Below, piece by piece: positions 11,457-60,177 of a stretch of DNA of 64,000 bases. The position numbers were made by a program, and so were the translations under genes. The DNA is taken from positions 248,001-312,000 of IMG/VR virus record IMGVR_UViG_3300033997_000243; one strand, given 5' to 3'. The number at the start of each line of letters is the position of its first letter. Within the stretch, counting starts at the first letter, position 1. The notes under the pieces are model-generated. The model ran no database searches and was not told the DNA's origin. It saw nothing but the letters and a program-made list of their open reading frames with translations.

Positions 11457-11903
11457 TTAACTCCCTTTGCTTTTTTGTTCAAGCGCACCGATTACTACGT
11501 TAACCAATTTCAAAGCCGAATTTTCTAACTCTAAAGCAGATAACCACTGGTCAGCAAGTTCTGCGTTTTGAATAGAGTAAAAAACTTTTTCAGGGCGTTT
11601 AGCATCCTGAGTATTTTTGCGACTCCACACTAAAGGAGGTGTGCCAGCTGCATCCGTTGTTAAAGCATCTACCATTTGCATAATAACTTTTTCTGAAAAT
11701 GGAAAACGCTTAGACAGATTGTAGGACAACATGCTATTAGATATACTCGGATAGCGCTTAAGCGTTTTGAGTACAACATAAAGCAGATTGTTCTTTTCCT
11801 CGAACAAGCCCTCAGAAACCAACCCAAACAATAGTGACCTTTTTATCAATAAGTCACCGTCCACTTTACTACTTTTTAATAACAAATTTGATGTAGTTGT
11901 CAT
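11457..11903 (-). CDS. hypothetical protein (possible winged helix)
   Basis: 148 aa ORF in operon; fold guess only. Confidence 0.7.
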   Translation of the reverse strand: MTTTSNLLLKSSKVDGDLLIKRSLLFGLVSEGLFEEKNNLLYVVLKTLKRYPSISNSMLSYNLSKRFPFSEKVIMQMVDALTTDAAGTPPLVWSRKNTQDAKRPEKVFYSIQNAELADQWLSALELENSALKLVNVVIGALEQKSKGS

Positions 11904-11912
11904 TTTACTTAC

Positions 11913-13043
11913 CTAATTCATGACGCCAAGTTCTAACGCAACTTCCCGTAGTTTTTTATGAACGTAATCGACATCAGATCCCATAAATTTAGCTACAACA
12001 CTTGCAGTTTCATCAAAACCGCGCTCAGCTAAAAAATCTTGACAACTTTTATCTTCTGTACGAATGTATCTTTTCTCACGGAGCCACTGTGTAAACTTGG
12101 CTACTTCCCGTCCAACATAAACAGCAAGGATGAATCCTTTTTTGGTGTTGCGTAAACGATCAAGCATACGATCTACGCTGAAATCAAAATCACTTCCAGA
12201 TTTAGTGTGAGCAGATTCATCGAAACGATCTTCGATTGAAATTTCTTCACCGTCACCATTGTAACGTGGAGTTATTTGACTCATAGCTTCTACGTTCAAC
12301 CGATAACGACGATCTGCGCCTTCACCATCACCAATAAGTGTTTGACGTTTTTCAGTTGTGTACTTATCGATAAGATTGCAAGTTGTATTACGAACACTGG
12401 CTCTTAAATAATTCAGCATGTGGTCATAACTTAAATTGCACGGCTGTCTTTTATAGTATGCTCTTAAAGCAGCTATAGTAAGTTCAGAGTGAAAATCCTT
12501 CTTATCAATATTGTTAGACTGATAAACAAATTTCAGTTTGCTTTTAGTCTTATAACGTATAAAGCGTTGAATCGGCTCGGCATACTGAGCAAAGCCATTA
12601 CGAACCTGCTCAAATTCACTTGGGCAAAAAAGTTTGCTTGTTTGCTTACGTTTAACCAAAAATTTGTTTATTGCCGTTCTGTGTATTTTAACTGCGTGAA
12701 ATACTCGCACAGCATCACAACGGCATAAATCAAATCGCGCATAGTTTTCTTCGGCCACCATACTGTTCAAACCACGATAGCCGGACAGGAATGTTGCATA
12801 GTAACGCAAATTCAAAACAACATAACCTGTTTCAGAAAGAAGTAATCTAAACTGGCTGGCAGAAAGTTCCGTATCATTAAAATTCACAACAGAGGAAATC
12901 TTTTTATGGAAATCCGCTATATTGGTCTGCATACAAAAATGTTCAACAACATAATTGAACAAATCTTTACATTGCTGAGTATCGTATTCAACACCCAAAA
13001 CTTTTTGAAAAACGCTTACTATGGATCTGGACTCTATTTGCAT
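11913..13043 (-). CDS. divergent sigma70-region-2-like protein
   Basis: DFHSELTIAALRAYYK...NYLRASVRNTTCNLIDKYTTEKR resembles sigma region 2; helical C-terminus. Confidence 0.5.
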   Translation of the reverse strand: MQIESRSIVSVFQKVLGVEYDTQQCKDLFNYVVEHFCMQTNIADFHKKISSVVNFNDTELSASQFRLLLSETGYVVLNLRYYATFLSGYRGLNSMVAEENYARFDLCRCDAVRVFHAVKIHRTAINKFLVKRKQTSKLFCPSEFEQVRNGFAQYAEPIQRFIRYKTKSKLKFVYQSNNIDKKDFHSELTIAALRAYYKRQPCNLSYDHMLNYLRASVRNTTCNLIDKYTTEKRQTLIGDGEGADRRYRLNVEAMSQITPRYNGDGEEISIEDRFDESAHTKSGSDFDFSVDRMLDRLRNTKKGFILAVYVGREVAKFTQWLREKRYIRTEDKSCQDFLAERGFDETASVVAKFMGSDVDYVHKKLREVALELGVMN

Positions 13044-13066: not shown

Positions 13067-14152
13067 TTAGTCTGCCATATCGCCAAGTTCAGTTTTGATC
13101 TTACCGCCTTTAGGACTTCGTTTCTTACCAGAGTTTTTCGTTTCGGCCTGAGCCTCTGCCAATTCCAGTTCCAATTTTTCAAGATAAGCTGTTGACAGAT
13201 GTTGTCTTAAGTCATCGATGTCATCGCTTTCTTTAATATCACGAGGTATACGAATTTTGTTCTTTTTAGCAAACTTCAGAAGTTGCGCTTCTTCCATTTC
13301 CTGAATATCTTCAATCGTGGTTTCACGCTTGTAATCAAGTTCATCCAGTTCGTAATGATCTTCATCCGTTTCTTTATGAGCTTTTGCATAGCCACGGTCA
13401 ATATCACGAGCAATATCAACAAGGCTGTAAACTTGCTGATCAGAACTTTCGCGTTTAATTTTGTTGCGCTTAGCCAACGATCCTATGTCATCAATGTAAC
13501 CCATGACTCCATTGGTATTCAATTTTAATTCAAATGGAAGTTCAAGAGCTTTTACATTTTTAGCGGTCGGTCTGTCCAACTTGGGATCTACAACACGACC
13601 TTTGAATTCCATCTGACGGCGGAAAATAGAAAACTGAGAAACAGTAAATATATTCTTCTCTTTTCCTAAATTTTGGAAAGTCAGTACAATCTTCCCATCA
13701 TCACTACACACACGCACATAATCTTTATCAGCTGAAAGAATACGTGCTGTCATGAAATTCGATAAATAATCTGAAGCCAAAGTTCCACGGAAACGAACAT
13801 AAACTTTTTGCAAGAATGTATAACCTTGCTTGCGAGTAATATGTTCGTTTAAAATAGCTGCACCAAAAAGTCGTAACTGTCCATTATCGAATTCACGCAT
13901 AATATCGGCAAGCTCATAAAGTGAACTGCCATTTTTCTCAATGCTCTCGGCCAGAGCCACACTGTTGGGTTTAAAATTTTCACAGCTCGAAGAGTATTCA
14001 AAGCGACCTTGTTTAATGCAAGGCGTATCATCACCAGCAATCAACCGCTCTCGTGTGAGTCCAATGCACTCACCACAAGTTAGTTTTTCTTCTGTTATGA
14101 CTTTTATCTTTATCTGCGCTTTGTTTACTGATGTCTGTCTTTTTGTTGTCAT
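13067..14152 (-). CDS. hypothetical protein with N-terminal Cys cluster and C-terminal HeH/Rho-N-like module
   Basis: CGEC..C..C; IQEMEEAQLLKFAKKNKIRIP...DDLRQHL. Confidence 0.75.
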   Translation of the reverse strand: MTTKRQTSVNKAQIKIKVITEEKLTCGECIGLTRERLIAGDDTPCIKQGRFEYSSSCENFKPNSVALAESIEKNGSSLYELADIMREFDNGQLRLFGAAILNEHITRKQGYTFLQKVYVRFRGTLASDYLSNFMTARILSADKDYVRVCSDDGKIVLTFQNLGKEKNIFTVSQFSIFRRQMEFKGRVVDPKLDRPTAKNVKALELPFELKLNTNGVMGYIDDIGSLAKRNKIKRESSDQQVYSLVDIARDIDRGYAKAHKETDEDHYELDELDYKRETTIEDIQEMEEAQLLKFAKKNKIRIPRDIKESDDIDDLRQHLSTAYLEKLELELAEAQAETKNSGKKRSPKGGKIKTELGDMAD

Positions 14153-46532: not shown

Positions 46533-47213
46533 TTATACCCAAGAACGCATGTTTAATTGCATTCTTTTCAATGCTTGTTTATGAAGATTACTTATGCGAG
46601 GCACACAAAGTTCCATACGATTTCCAATCTCTTCCATGTTAAGATCGCGCATATAGTAAAGATTAACTACAATGGATTCCTGCTTTGGCAGTTTTGATAC
46701 GAATACTTTTAAAGCAGATCCTAACTTTGTGACCTCGCACTGACGATCCACAAAATCCACTTCAGTGCAGAAACCGTCAAAGTTGCTTTCATTGAGTTCA
46801 CTGTCAAGTAACACATGAATGCTGTGTGTTTCACGTTCGAGTTTATTAAACTCTTCGATAGAAATATTCAGCTCACGAGCAATTTCAATATTTGTTGGAA
46901 CGCGCAAAAACTTCTGCTCTAATGCAGAACGCACTTCATTTAGTTTACGAGCTTCTGCACAAACATTTTTAGGAATCCAACCTAGTTTTCTGGCCTCGTC
47001 TAACATTGAACCGTAAACTCGAATTCCAGCAAAAGTTTGAAAAGAAGTGCCAGAGTTTGAATCATAACGATCAATCGACTCCAGTATTCCAAGCATACCA
47101 GCTTGGATTAAATCATCCAGCTGTATACTCGCGGAAAGTTTGCCAATTAAACTGTTGGCAATGCGTTTAACCATAACCATATTATCCGCAATAATTTTTT
47201 GTTTGCTATTCAT
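46533..47213 (-). CDS. fliA: FliA/sigma28-family sigma factor
   Basis: VKRIANSL..KLSASIQLDDLIQAGMLGILES..RYD...G..F.TFAGIRVYGSMLDEARKLGWIP; region 4 LYY..DLNMEEIG..M.L...RIS.LHKQAL. Confidence 0.9.
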   Translation of the reverse strand: MNSKQKIIADNMVMVKRIANSLIGKLSASIQLDDLIQAGMLGILESIDRYDSNSGTSFQTFAGIRVYGSMLDEARKLGWIPKNVCAEARKLNEVRSALEQKFLRVPTNIEIARELNISIEEFNKLERETHSIHVLLDSELNESNFDGFCTEVDFVDRQCEVTKLGSALKVFVSKLPKQESIVVNLYYMRDLNMEEIGNRMELCVPRISNLHKQALKRMQLNMRSWV

Positions 47214-52656: not shown

Positions 52657-53288
52657 ACATCACCAAAAGCTTTACGCGCACACATTAAAATCATTTCCGC
52701 AGTATCTTCAATACTAACTCCATTTATGTCGAAAGTGACTAAACTTTTCGCAACAGTATGATCCATATTGCTAAGAGCAAACATGCGGTCATATTCGGCA
52801 CCAATCTTTTCTCTGAACTCAAAATACTCAAACTCAATTCGATCTTCAGGCTCTTTTACTTTGCCTGAGTTAGTTCCGTAAAAAATCATATCAGGAACCA
52901 AGGTATCTAAACTCAGTATTTTACGCAGGTTATAAAAGTGCTCAAGTGGAAAACCTTTACCTCCACACTGAAAAGCTCTTGTTGAAAAATCCCAACGATC
53001 TGCAACAACATTAACGCCAGCGGCAAGTTGTGATCTTACGTAAGGAACCAATTGCGCTCTGGCAGCAAACATTAAAAGAGTTTCTGCTTCTACAGTAAAC
53101 TTTTCATCAGAGTTATTAGCATTACCTTTTACCACAGTACGTATCTGTTCTGCAATCGGAGTTCCTCCAGGTTCGCGTACTTGAATAGTCGGGCCAAATA
53201 TTTTAGTAAGATTTGCCGTCAATATTTTTGCTTGTTCACTTTTACCAACACCATCCAATCCTTCAAGTACAAAAAATTTACCTTGCAT
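52653..53288 (-). CDS. tmk: thymidylate kinase
   Basis: MQGKFFVLEGLDGVGKS, REPGGT, ETLLMFAARAQ, VVADRW; start moved to ATG 53288. Confidence 0.93.
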   Translation of the reverse strand: MQGKFFVLEGLDGVGKSEQAKILTANLTKIFGPTIQVREPGGTPIAEQIRTVVKGNANNSDEKFTVEAETLLMFAARAQLVPYVRSQLAAGVNVVADRWDFSTRAFQCGGKGFPLEHFYNLRKILSLDTLVPDMIFYGTNSGKVKEPEDRIEFEYFEFREKIGAEYDRMFALSNMDHTVAKSLVTFDINGVSIEDTAEMILMCARKAFGDV

Positions 53289-53310
53289 AGTTATTTCCCC
53301 AGTTAAGATC

Positions 53311-53336
53311 AAAAAAGGCCACAGCAAAGTGGCCTT
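53311..53336 (-). terminator. intrinsic terminator closing the structured-RNA island
   Basis: AAGGCCAC/GTGGCCTT plus U6 on minus strand. Confidence 0.8.
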
Positions 53337-53342
53337 GTGTTT

Positions 53343-54356
53343 AATAGATTTTTGTTCTGACGGCAAAACGCAACAGACTGTAATATGTACTGGTGCTCGA
53401 ACAAAGCCAGTGCGAAAGTTGAATCTTACCGTCAGAACAAAAATCTATTTTATTCGGTGGGTTTGTTTTCCTTGTCCAAAATGCGAACAACAAACCCACC
53501 TGCTGGATTATTTAATATCGGTATTGCGGCTACCGAGATTTGTTCTTACCCTCTCAACAAGATAAGGAGTCATGTAAATAACAAATCGCCAAGCATCATA
53601 TCAACGAGTGCTTATAGTGAGCAGGTTTATGCTCCACTTGTACAACGCGAACAGTTAACCAACCTTTAAGGTCAAAGTAATCTGTTATACGTTGAATGTT
53701 GGTTGATATGCGAAAACTTTCTACGGATGACCGCCGTAAATTGTTTTCGCGGTTAATACAAATCGTTAGAAAAAAGATGAATAGAGTTACCATGAATATT
53801 CCTGTATAGCGGCATTTCAAATACACGACCCAAGAATTGAAGCAAGGAAAAAAGTCCAAAAACCTACAACAATTCAAAGTCTAAACATTGCTTAATGTTA
53901 GATTAAGGTTTGTACTCTCAGCGGGAGTTCGCGTCAGCACGTTCATGTTTTGAAATAACGAATGAGTGCGTGAGATACTCACAATACTAACCGACTTGGA
54001 GGGACGCAAGTATTGTCTCGTTGTTTTTCCTCTATAAGTTCATCAGCACAGCGGCAAGGAAGAATCCGCCTCACACAAAACTTTTTCAAGGACTGCTTAA
54101 ACTAATGCCGCGAAAAATTAGAATGCCTGTTCGACACAACTTGCTTGGAACCCCACGTACCTAAAAGGAGATCGAACAGACAAAGATGTTAAAGGAGATT
54201 CCACTAAAAATCTCGAAGTTAGGCTACTTCGTATAAAGTCTAGTCAAGGGATCTAGCTTGACATAATAAACTTTGCACTGCATACCAGCGCACAAGCAAC
54301 GGCTGTTCTGACCTAAGACAAAAAATGTCTCTGCTTGCAGATCTAAAGTGGAATCT
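53343..54356 (-). ncRNA. candidate large structured ncRNA(s), ~1 kb
   Basis: No credible CDS. Contiguous stems including a 21-bp perfect IR (53343-63/53429-49), a 12-bp IR (53456-67/53489-500) and a 10-bp IR (54196-205/54347-56); G-U extensions mostly favour the minus strand. Confidence 0.65.
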
Positions 54357-54687
54357 ACTTTAACATATTCAAAATATCTTCAAATTCTTCTGTAGTCAAT
54401 TGGTTTCGTTCAACTAAAATTTTCATGTAATTCAAATACAAACCTTTTGAGTAAGAAGTTTGGGCTATCAAGAATTCTACTTCAGGCCAACGACATTTCT
54501 TTTCGCGCAAAACAATTAAAGCGCATCTGTAAGGTATTCTATTTGGAGGCAAAGAAGTTAAAGCTTGCTTAAGCGTTGTAAATCTTCGCATCTGACTCCA
54601 ATAAAAAGCGCAGAATTTTTCTTTGTTGTTAAGTTCAAGAAAATGTTTAGAATAAAATTCAGGGCAATTTAAAAACTCTGGTTCCAT
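54355..54687 (-). CDS. hypothetical protein inside RNA island
   Basis: 110 aa ORF, RWPEVEFLI motif. Confidence 0.7.
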   Translation of the reverse strand: MEPEFLNCPEFYSKHFLELNNKEKFCAFYWSQMRRFTTLKQALTSLPPNRIPYRCALIVLREKKCRWPEVEFLIAQTSYSKGLYLNYMKILVERNQLTTEEFEDILNMLK

Positions 54688-54705
54688 AAATGATTACCAA
54701 ATAAA

Positions 54706-54819
54706 GATTCCTGTTCAGTGATACACTTAAACCACCAACTTTTCATAGTCTCCTACGCGGCTAAGTGCATGACTATCTTAAGTTACTTAGCTAACTGAAA
54801 TAAGTTTAGTGTTGGAATC
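54706..54819 (-). ncRNA. candidate structured RNA domain
   Basis: Nested GATTCC/GGAATC, ACACT(T)AAAC/GTTTAGTGT, TTTCA/TGAAA, TAGTC/GACTA, AGTTA/TAACT. Confidence 0.45.
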
Positions 54820-54906
54820 AAAAACTTAGCGCAATCAAAATAACAAAAACTAAAACAAGAGAAAGCAGATAGGGTTTTAATTCTGAATAATCTGGAAGCA
54901 TTTTTG

Positions 54907-55000
<94 letters not shown>

Positions 55001-55019
<19 letters not shown>

Positions 55020-55390
55020 CATGGAAAGTCACTGAAAAGCAATTTCAACAAACAGCCTCTAGTGGAAAGCATTACACTATAACCATCTATCTTATATGCT
55101 TTGATAAACGTGATCAGATCGCCAATCAGATTCGGTGGCGCTAATACAAAACAAAGAATTTCTCATGACAGCTACTCACGTATCTCGCATGTCGATGCAA
55201 ACGAATAAACTTGTTTTGTAAAACCAGTCTTGCGACCAGAAACAGCACTTAGAGGACGCTAGAGTGCCGAAATAAAAAAGACCGTAAGAAATTCTTACAC
55301 AAACTATCGGAAAGGATGTAGCGCAGACACAATCCAGTTCCTGAGTTTAGTTGCCAAACAAATACATGCAAAGTTTGGCAGGTCAGGGAA
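55001..55390 (-). ncRNA. candidate structured RNA upstream of tRNA
   Basis: Non-coding; stems CCATGTTT/AAACATGG, AAAGCAT/ATGCTTT, TACAAAACAA/TTGTTTTGTA, AAGAATTTCT/AGAAATTCTT, TGCCAAAC/GTTTGGCA. Confidence 0.5.
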
Positions 55391-55392
55391 AT

Positions 55393-55815: not shown

Positions 55816-55835
55816 TTGAGTGTACCTTAATGAAG

Positions 55836-55961
55836 TGCTGGTGCGGAAAGCTAGAAGTTCAGGTTTAATGTTCTACTTTCACCCCTAAACCAAAAGCCTT
55901 GTGAGTGTAATAACAAACTGAGTGAGTTATGTTTAAATTACCTAACATTTCCGCACCAGCA
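55836..55961 (-). ncRNA. candidate 126-nt RNA closed by a perfect 14-bp stem
   Basis: TGCTGGTGCGGAAA (55836-49) / TTTCCGCACCAGCA (55948-61). Confidence 0.55.
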
Positions 55962-55967
55962 AAACTT

Positions 55968-57945: not shown

Positions 57946-60177
57946 TTATTCGTCATCAGTATCGATTTTTTCTTTACTGCGTTTGACGATTTGATCTTTG
58001 TAGCGTTTCGGGCCTTTTCCACTTGCACAATGTTTAGAACACCATGTACGAATGTTTCCAGCTTTCTTCAAACCAACTCGCTCACAAACTTCGGTGATTT
58101 GTTTTTTACTACCAAGAACAAGAACTTTGAAATCTTCAAAGCTTAATTTTTTCGCACCATGCAGTGGAACATCTGGATGGAACTTTAAGTTGTTTCTTGT
58201 TCCATCTACATACCCAAGTTGTTTTAAATACTCAAAGGTATCAAAAACTGGATCGAATCCACGAGCACGACCGTCACCATCAGTAACCCAAACACGCGCC
58301 CAAACTTCACGGTTAGGAATACCACCGAGTTTGTTTTTGACAGTACGCAAACAGATGAAACGATAAATATCTTTACCGCCTTCAACAGTCACAGAATTTT
58401 CTTCCATGATACCTTTATCAAGAACAAAACCGTAAGGTGCAGATCCACGAGAAGTAGATTTTATACGAACGTCTGAGTTATGGCTAACAATTCCGTTAGT
58501 GATAATTGTATGCGTGTCAGGCATGTTTGCATCGTAAGTCTGCTCAGCTTCTTGATATTCAATATCGACAATTTCGTCAGTAAGATAATCGACATCGCAA
58601 GAAAGATCCAAGACAGAAACAGTATAAAAGTTCTCTACCTTTTCTAACTTTGAAAATACACAACTATCAAGAAGTAGTAACTGGAAATCTACTGCGTGTT
58701 GGTAGTGTCTGTGGGTATTAGTTACAGAACTATATCCTTTAATATAAGCACTAACAAGATCGGAAGATCCTGTCCTTATATTAAATGGAACTCCATGTAA
58801 GGAATCCAACTGACCTAAACCTACCTTGACGCCTGTATTATAAGCATCTTGATAATCAAGATCAGAATTGCTTGATACAGGTCTAGTAATTTCGTTTGAT
58901 GGTTTAATCAAAACAAATTTACCAACAGTCAAAGAATCAAGTCTAGCAAATTGATAGTTACTTGGTGATTTAGCTTGGTCATTAGCTAAAACCTGATGTC
59001 CATGTTTGCCGCGCAGTGTATAGCCATTTGATGTAGTAATTTTAATGATATTATCTACACCAGTATCGTCGAAGATTGTCGGAGATTCCAAACCGCATTT
59101 ACCTTGAATTTTAGGTAAAGAGTGTCTGAATTTTTCGTAGTATTCTTCAACAGATACCAACCCAAGTTCTGTTCTGATTCGAGTTTCAGGTGCCAGACAG
59201 AAAAATTTGAGCGCTTCCCCGGAAGGCTCATACTCAGGATTACCGTGCATAACAGCAGGACGTAAACGTAATTGGTTTACACCAAAAACAGTCATACGTT
59301 TTTTACGCATACCGCTTCGTACTTTTTTAATACCAGCAGCGTGCATACGTGCTTGTTCTGCCATAGCTTCATTACGATCATCATCATCTAAGCCTTCAGG
59401 CAACATGGCCGGATAACTATCAACGATTGATACTGCTTGCATAAAGCCATCTGGAGCAGGAATACGAATTTTATTTGTTTTAGTCAAATACTTGACATCG
59501 TACTTACCAGAAAACTTCTTTTTGTTTTCTTGCGTATGTTCGTAAACATACCAATACTTATCACCGATTTTTTGTACGTCAGGCAGTGCGCGACGAAGTT
59601 TTGCTTGGTAACGATAAAAATCTTCGCCAACATCAGGCATGTAGTAACGAATTTTTGGTTTAATCAACCAAGAACCAGTATCGTCATCTTTGATACCGAA
59701 TATTGTAGTAGCATCAGATTTTAATCCAAGCGCTTCCATCATGTTACCGATATATTCAATGTCGGTAGAGCCTTCGTAATCAAAAATACTGGCAGCAATT
59801 TTTCTGTTTAATTCATCAATAGCATTCTGAATCATACAGAGAAGAGTCATTGTCAATGTCGATTTACAGCTTTGTTCACCACCATAAATAGTGTACCAAC
59901 CGCCACCAACAATACCGCCATTAAGAAGTAAATCAAGAGCCAACAGCCCTGTGGACAATCTTTTTTCATCACGGTCAACCAAACTGCTTGAAAGGCCATA
60001 TTTCTTTTCAACACCATCAAGCAAATCATCGATGTCGTCAGCAGGAGAATAACCACGAGCATCTTCAATAGCAGAGTCTACAATTTCTTTGGCAGACTTG
60101 CCTTTTGATTTACCCTTTTTCTTTGACTCTTCTACAGCAACGTCATCATCAATGTCTAACTTTTTCTTTTTAGCCAT
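57946..60177 (-). CDS. recA: RecA/UvsX recombinase with intein
   Basis: STGLLALDLLLNGG, IYGGEQSCKST, IVDS, MAEQARM, VNQLR, GNPEYEPSGEALKFF|SDVR, VKNK. Confidence 0.93.
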   Translation of the reverse strand: MAKKKKLDIDDDVAVEESKKKGKSKGKSAKEIVDSAIEDARGYSPADDIDDLLDGVEKKYGLSSSLVDRDEKRLSTGLLALDLLLNGGIVGGGWYTIYGGEQSCKSTLTMTLLCMIQNAIDELNRKIAASIFDYEGSTDIEYIGNMMEALGLKSDATTIFGIKDDDTGSWLIKPKIRYYMPDVGEDFYRYQAKLRRALPDVQKIGDKYWYVYEHTQENKKKFSGKYDVKYLTKTNKIRIPAPDGFMQAVSIVDSYPAMLPEGLDDDDRNEAMAEQARMHAAGIKKVRSGMRKKRMTVFGVNQLRLRPAVMHGNPEYEPSGEALKFFCLAPETRIRTELGLVSVEEYYEKFRHSLPKIQGKCGLESPTIFDDTGVDNIIKITTSNGYTLRGKHGHQVLANDQAKSPSNYQFARLDSLTVGKFVLIKPSNEITRPVSSNSDLDYQDAYNTGVKVGLGQLDSLHGVPFNIRTGSSDLVSAYIKGYSSVTNTHRHYQHAVDFQLLLLDSCVFSKLEKVENFYTVSVLDLSCDVDYLTDEIVDIEYQEAEQTYDANMPDTHTIITNGIVSHNSDVRIKSTSRGSAPYGFVLDKGIMEENSVTVEGGKDIYRFICLRTVKNKLGGIPNREVWARVWVTDGDGRARGFDPVFDTFEYLKQLGYVDGTRNNLKFHPDVPLHGAKKLSFEDFKVLVLGSKKQITEVCERVGLKKAGNIRTWCSKHCASGKGPKRYKDQIVKRSKEKIDTDDE
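58477..59199 (-). mobile_element. intein (241 aa) in RecA, degenerate LAGLIDADG remnant
   Basis: Starts CLAPETRI, block B G..GHQV, block F TYD, ends NGIVSHN followed by Ser. Confidence 0.92.

Follow-up and report, generated by a model that had tools for sequence, protein, structure and literature searches.

A roughly 1-kb, highly folded, presumably non-coding RNA that matches no Rfam family is predicted between the tRNA genes and the dTMP-kinase gene of a small group of uncultivated jumbo phages, and a long hairpin together with a neighboring 12-bp hairpin forms its conserved 3′-terminal domain. We analyzed a 64,000-nucleotide stretch (the window; positions 248001–312000) of the IMG/VR virus record IMGVR_UViG_3300033997_000243, which is 319,518 bp long and has direct terminal repeats, so that it is a jumbo phage. 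Almost all genes in the window are on the minus strand. The predicted RNA (about 54354 to 53311, minus strand, ~1.05 kb) lies downstream of tRNA-Gly(UCC) (54921–54995, minus), the only tRNA gene of the genome, and of a 110-aa ORF (54355–54687, minus) that is conserved in the related contig L008 (ENA, 329 kb), absent from clade B (see below), and without a Pfam or PHROG match. Its 5′ limit was taken as the base after the stop codon of this ORF and its 3′ limit as the U run of an intrinsic terminator, which is followed after about 20 nt by the dTMP (thymidylate) kinase gene (tmk, PF02223; 52653–53288, minus).

The two helices had been described in an earlier note, and every sequence statement in it was confirmed. 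Positions 53343–53363 are perfectly complementary to 53429–53449, and on the minus strand six more pairs, four of them G-U (53364–53369 with 53423–53428), extend the helix to 27 contiguous pairs, so that the 5′ arm of this stalk spans 53423–53449 and its 3′ arm 53343–53369. After a C/U mismatch, CAAC/GUUG (53418–53421 with 53371–53374) and an ACUGG/CCAGU arm (53407–53411 with 53389–53393) follow, whereas the 12-bp hairpin pairs 53456–53467 with 53489–53500 and contains a small inner stem and a purine-rich 3′ loop strand (GGAAAA). The 113-nt stalk-and-head folds at −46.2 kcal/mol compared to −18.9 ± 3.5 for dinucleotide shuffles (z −7.9), and the hairpin has a z-score of −3.9. The 21-bp repeat is the longest local inverted repeat in the whole genome, the next being 16 bp, and no other such helices occur. 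Among the shorter repeats, a 14-bp perfect inverted repeat (55836–55849 with 55948–55961) encloses two inner hairpins in the intergenic stretch between two small ORFs (55816–55967, minus; MFE −46.3 kcal/mol), which could be another structured RNA or a regulatory site. Three points of the note need correction. On the RNA strand the 12-bp hairpin precedes the long helix rather than following it; the head, described as branched, is one 5-bp arm plus a 14-nt single strand in clades A and B and a true three-way branch only in clade C; and the 9-mer repeat discussed below is not conserved.

The helices close a 1,066-bp stretch (53289–54354) that is among the largest ORF-free gaps of the genome. No frame is open under the standard code or any single stop-codon reassignment, and indels that are not multiples of three separate it from L008, ruling out a hidden gene in the readings examined. 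As RNA, the minus strand of 53337–54330 folds with a z-score of −7.6 and the plus strand with −5.4. Searches against Rfam covariance models at the gathering threshold across the window, at E up to 10 for 53200–55100, and at E up to 1 for the clade B, C, and D loci returned only tRNA, thus excluding matches to the models of GOLLD, ROOL, self-splicing introns, RNase P RNA, tmRNA, 6S, Y RNA, and other known RNAs at these thresholds, and ARAGORN found no tmRNA or tRNA inside the gap.

Searches with the flanking dTMP kinase and the nearby UvsX recombinase brought in related phage contigs, giving thirteen loci together with the window. They fall into four clades, namely clade A (the window, L004, which is 99.2% identical, and L008, which is about 85% identical in the gap), clade B (L013, L025, L026, L027, L029), clade C (L014, L028, L030, L034), and clade D (L031–L033). 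Every locus has an ORF-free gap of 0.95–1.3 kb directly upstream of tmk and, where the contig reaches far enough, tRNA-Met and/or tRNA-Gly lie upstream on the same strand. In clade B the gap also contains, between tRNA-Gly and the RNA, a conserved 41-codon ORF with a Shine–Dalgarno sequence (L026 1689–1814, L025 65–190, L027 62–187, L029 501–626), which trims the RNA to about 1.15 kb; this ORF looks degenerate in L013 and is unrelated to the 110-aa ORF of the window clade. A 705-bp ORF-free region around the tRNA gene of the window (54688–55392, minus) is 90% identical to L008 and hence more conserved than the kilobase RNA itself (85%), but no remnant of tRNA-Met was found there, although relatives carry tRNA-Met plus tRNA-Gly at this place. 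The UvsX/RecA-like recombinase (57946–60177, minus) has 743 aa compared to 497 aa in L013 and L014, and the additional ~250 aa give a sub-threshold Pfam Intein_splicing match (E 1e-5, residues 375–567), so this is probably an intein; in a 99%-identical contig (L012) the match spans 2,844 nt, suggesting a still larger insertion. The 3.8-kb clade C contig L030 (GCA_019751115.1, JAIENT010001014.1), which carries the RNA and a phage-type dTMP kinase, is binned in a MAG labeled Pararheinheimera sp., which is either a weak hint at a Rheinheimera or Pararheinheimera host or a binning artifact.

No similar DNA was found for the window, L013, or L014 RNA in about 50,000 deposited phage genomes, and the related isolates Phage NCTB and Vibrio phage Yong XC31 show no homologous region. 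A pattern scan with the conserved block found only already known contigs in the viral contig collection and nothing among the prokaryote genome contigs. A scan with the head motif gave 21 loci, of which the ten with the most pairs enclosing the motif were inspected; by eye these look like chance matches, some inside coding sequence, and none has a stalk around the motif. The metagenome contigs L022 and L023, which carry distant UvsX relatives, gave no convincing covariance model hit in a search that left out L024.

Compensatory changes support the fold along its whole length. On the alignment of the window, L004, and L008, RNAalifold predicts 330 pairs, of which, between the window and L008, 20 changed on both sides and stayed paired, 23 changed on one side and stayed paired, and 9 broke, whereas sliding the partners by 1–3 columns gives 0–2 double changes and 53–71 broken pairs. 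Sixteen of the 20 compensatory pairs lie outside 53343–53500, three are in the 12-bp hairpin, and one, an A-U to G-C change in L008, is in the stalk. A core of about 95 nt (53921–54016, minus) is invariant between the three sequences. Over the full length, the five clade B sequences (57–83% identical) give 236 consensus pairs with 90.8% of cells paired and 61 pairs with double changes, against 8–16 in slid controls. A clade B profile aligns to the L008 RNA over 565 nt (E 6e-13), so clades A and B are homologous along the body of the RNA and not only at its 3′ end.

The same data fix the strand and make a DNA-level element, such as a cruciform, a replication origin, or a recombination site, highly unlikely. 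In favor of such an element, the 21-bp core is a perfect DNA palindrome arm pair, and the covariance model also scores the opposite strand, although weakly (54 against 211 bits). However, four of the six extension pairs exist only as G-U on the minus strand, one-sided changes keep G-U pairing on this strand but break it on the other, and the consensus fold energy is −316.8 kcal/mol on the minus strand compared to −260.9 on the plus strand, with 9 against 21 broken pairs. In addition, the whole kilobase covaries as RNA and a terminator follows.

The 3′ domain is conserved as a structure. As a MAFFT alignment of the divergent 3′ domains proved not to be structural, we used alignments fitted to covariance models, which inflates the pairing percentages, although the size of the effect and the detection across clades do not depend on this. 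A model of the window's domain (R1) finds the clade B domains directly upstream of tmk on the correct strand at 26–40 bits. In the five clade B sequences, 97.1% of cells are paired and 35 of 48 pairs changed on both sides, which none of 500 shuffles reaches, while slid controls pair at 28–41%; in the 12-bp hairpin, 11 of 12 pairs changed on both sides and 98% of cells are paired. On eight clade A and B sequences, 98.4% of cells pair and 30 of 39 pairs changed on both sides, with slid controls at 32–42%. As an independent cross-check, a model built from clade B alone (R2) recovers the window's domain at exactly 53338–53503 (minus) with 56.8 bits (E 2e-9) and that of L008 with 59.6 bits. R2 also gives the top, though weak, hit of each clade C locus at the expected place, but the assignment of clades C and D rests on synteny, architecture, and short motifs rather than on significant sequence or covariance model scores (12.7–18.7 bits), and the stalk shows no variation within clade C.

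Conservation takes different forms in the stalk and in the head. The stalk has 27 bp (+4 in the coaxial extension) in clade A, 10+16 bp with one mismatch in clade B, and about 25–26 bp with one mismatch or bulge in clade C; its center (UUUGUUCUG/CAGAACAAA) is partly conserved between clades A and B, while both ends covary. The upstream hairpin keeps an 11–13-bp stem with an inner stem in clades A, B, and C, and in A and B also a GGAAA(A) loop strand. The head (53370–53422, minus) consists of the CAAC/GUUG extension, the 5-bp arm with a loop carrying GUUCGA (53402–53397), and the 14-nt 3′ single strand carrying CAUAUUAC (53387–53380). The only sequence elements of the domain kept in clades A, B, C, and D are here, namely the GUU(C/A)G and (G)UAC(A)UAUUAC motifs. 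In clade D the same head (UGUUCGAG...GCAUAUUACAG) sits on a stalk of only 11–14 bp (in L031 at about 2900–2990). By eye, the GUUCGA loop resembles a T-loop, the five-nucleotide U-N-N-R-A module closed by a stem as in the tRNA T arm, RNase P, and T-box stem I; from sequence inspection alone, UUCGA occurs in clades A and D and in L025 and UUAGA in most of clade B, but clade C has UUCGG, which departs from the motif. No complement of CAUAUUAC occurs elsewhere in the RNAs, and no partner for the head was found.

The intrinsic terminator (53311–53336, minus) has an 8-bp G+C-rich stem (five G-C pairs) with a 6-nt loop (together 53336–53315) and a U run, with equivalents at the same place in clades B and C but none in clade D. 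Its position about 20 nt upstream of the tmk ribosome-binding site, with no promoter evident between them, would also be compatible with the RNA being a long 5′ leader of the dTMP-kinase operon whose 3′ helices take part in regulated termination, as would the fixed arrangement next to tmk in every locus and a weak, structure-only resemblance to Rfam leader and terminator models far below threshold. We consider this unlikely, as no conserved anti-terminator alternative was found, clade D lacks the terminator, 1 kb of covarying structure is far more than any known attenuator needs, and the tRNA linkage points to a stable-RNA unit. The only candidate alternative pairing, proposed in the earlier note, relies on the recurrence of TGTTCTGAC at 54304–54312 (on the minus strand the 9-mer GUCAGAACA, identical to part of the stalk's 3′ arm), which we found in a predicted hairpin loop. 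It is not supported, since L008 keeps only a 7-mer, other clades have no consistent counterpart, and copies of that size arise by chance with P about 0.2–0.3 (8 nt or more in 15–40% of shuffled upstream sequences). In all four clade C RNAs, the strongest partner for the stalk's 3′ arm elsewhere in the RNA lies at the same internal position (about 550–590, e.g. L014 about 13160–13200; duplex −17 to −22 kcal/mol), but these sequences are closely related and this may only reflect shared ancestry. Regarding a promoter of its own, the sigma-70-like site at 54399–54371 (minus) is not conserved in L008 and promoter-like sites are at chance frequency. However, L008 encodes a protein with sigma-70 region 2, 3, and 4 domains a few kb downstream of the RNA (11746–12435; window about 46533–47213, minus), so the phage may use its own sigma factor, which would make scans for the sigma-70 consensus uninformative.

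The interpretation given in the earlier note, an RNase III processing stem or a dsRNA decoy at the 3′ end of a larger transcript, is partly supported. That these are RNA-level domains on the minus strand at the 3′ end of a larger transcript agrees with the G-U pairs, the strand-asymmetric covariation, and the terminator, whereas the specific function is neither shown nor excluded. Cleavage by host RNase III, which would mature the 3′ end of the upstream RNA and separate it from the dTMP-kinase mRNA, remains a live possibility, if the less likely one. The near-perfect helix exceeds the roughly two helical turns RNase III needs in three clades, its length is kept while its sequence turns over, it is unique in the genome, and it sits at the boundary between a presumed stable RNA and an mRNA. 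On the other hand, clade D keeps the head motif on a stalk below this length, sequence conservation lies in the head and not at a putative cleavage site, the terminator already defines a 3′ end 6 nt further on, and no RNase III or dsRBD gene was found in the phage. RNase III hairpins of phage T7 early mRNAs and the processing stems of rRNA operons likewise place a long double-stranded segment between a stable or structured RNA and downstream message, but T7 sites are short hairpins with internal loops that recur between many genes and rRNA stems enclose the whole mature RNA, whereas here one helix per genome encloses only a 53-nt head. A decoy soaking up a host dsRNA-binding or dsRNA-sensing factor is very unlikely, with nothing in its favor beyond the existence of a long, conserved dsRNA segment. 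There is a single helix per genome, embedded in a large conserved fold with a sequence-conserved head and short in clade D, it has no known target, and nothing in the neighborhood, where the proteins are uninformative in PHROGs and Pfam, links it to defense.

We therefore favor, with a probability of roughly 0.6, a reading in which the ~26–31-bp helix is a rigid stalk, with selection acting on its length and pairing but not on most of its sequence, that holds out a small, sequence-conserved head at the 3′ end of a large stable RNA. The head may be a docking site, either for a tertiary or intermolecular RNA contact or for a protein, and the stalk, the 12-bp hairpin, and the terminator hairpin together may give the RNA a compact 3′ end that resists exonucleases, while read-through of the terminator would supply the downstream genes. 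Of this picture, the analysis itself establishes the structure with its conservation and covariation, the strand, the synteny, and the lack of an Rfam match, whereas transcription, probable co-transcription with the tRNAs in one transcription unit, the RNA ends and stability, the docking role of the head, and end protection are inferences from sequence, and the covariation rests on a family of only about 13 loci in four clades.

The closest known systems are GOLLD and ROOL. GOLLD is a large, multi-domain structured RNA of unknown function and of comparable or smaller size, found in phages and prophages and often next to tRNA genes (PMC5737381), a context shared by the RNA described here, which differs in lacking a match to the GOLLD model, in being longer (~1.05–1.2 kb), in being carried by uncultivated jumbo phages, and in its fixed position upstream of tmk. 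ROOL has the same genomic habits, being tRNA-adjacent and phage-associated with many multistem junctions (PMC5737381), but its model also gave no hit at any threshold used, and it averages 581 nt, about half the size of this RNA. Cryo-EM shows RNA-only assemblies for GOLLD and ROOL (bioRxiv 10.1101/2024.12.08.627333). The species 1 and 2 RNAs of the phage T4 tRNA gene cluster are likewise stable, phage-encoded non-tRNA RNAs of unknown function beside tRNA genes, but they are around 140 nt, and the RNA has no match in the phage collection to indicate a sequence relation. A large survey of IMG/VR structured RNAs reported only elements of 29–151 nt (PMC10690425), although we cannot exclude that a fragment of this RNA is among them.

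The 3′ stalk-and-head module offers a compact, testable handle on this RNA, for which clade D provides a natural short-stalk control. A more speculative and, on present evidence, unlikely possibility is that the RNA represents a new class of giant "ornate" phage RNA, larger than GOLLD, acting as an RNA machine or RNA-only assembly, in which the constant-length ~27-bp stalk would serve as a strut and the T-loop-like GUUCGA and CAUAUUAC of the head as the contact that joins protomers or grips a partner such as a tRNA elbow, which would tie its function to the tRNA genes it travels with. Very few bacterial or phage non-coding RNAs above 500 nt are known, and those that are (rRNA, group II introns, RNase P, GOLLD, ROOL, OLE, raiA) have repaid study, most recently as RNA-only cages. 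To these, the RNA described here would add a family without a relative in Rfam, of about 1–1.2 kb, with clear covariation and a fixed genomic position.
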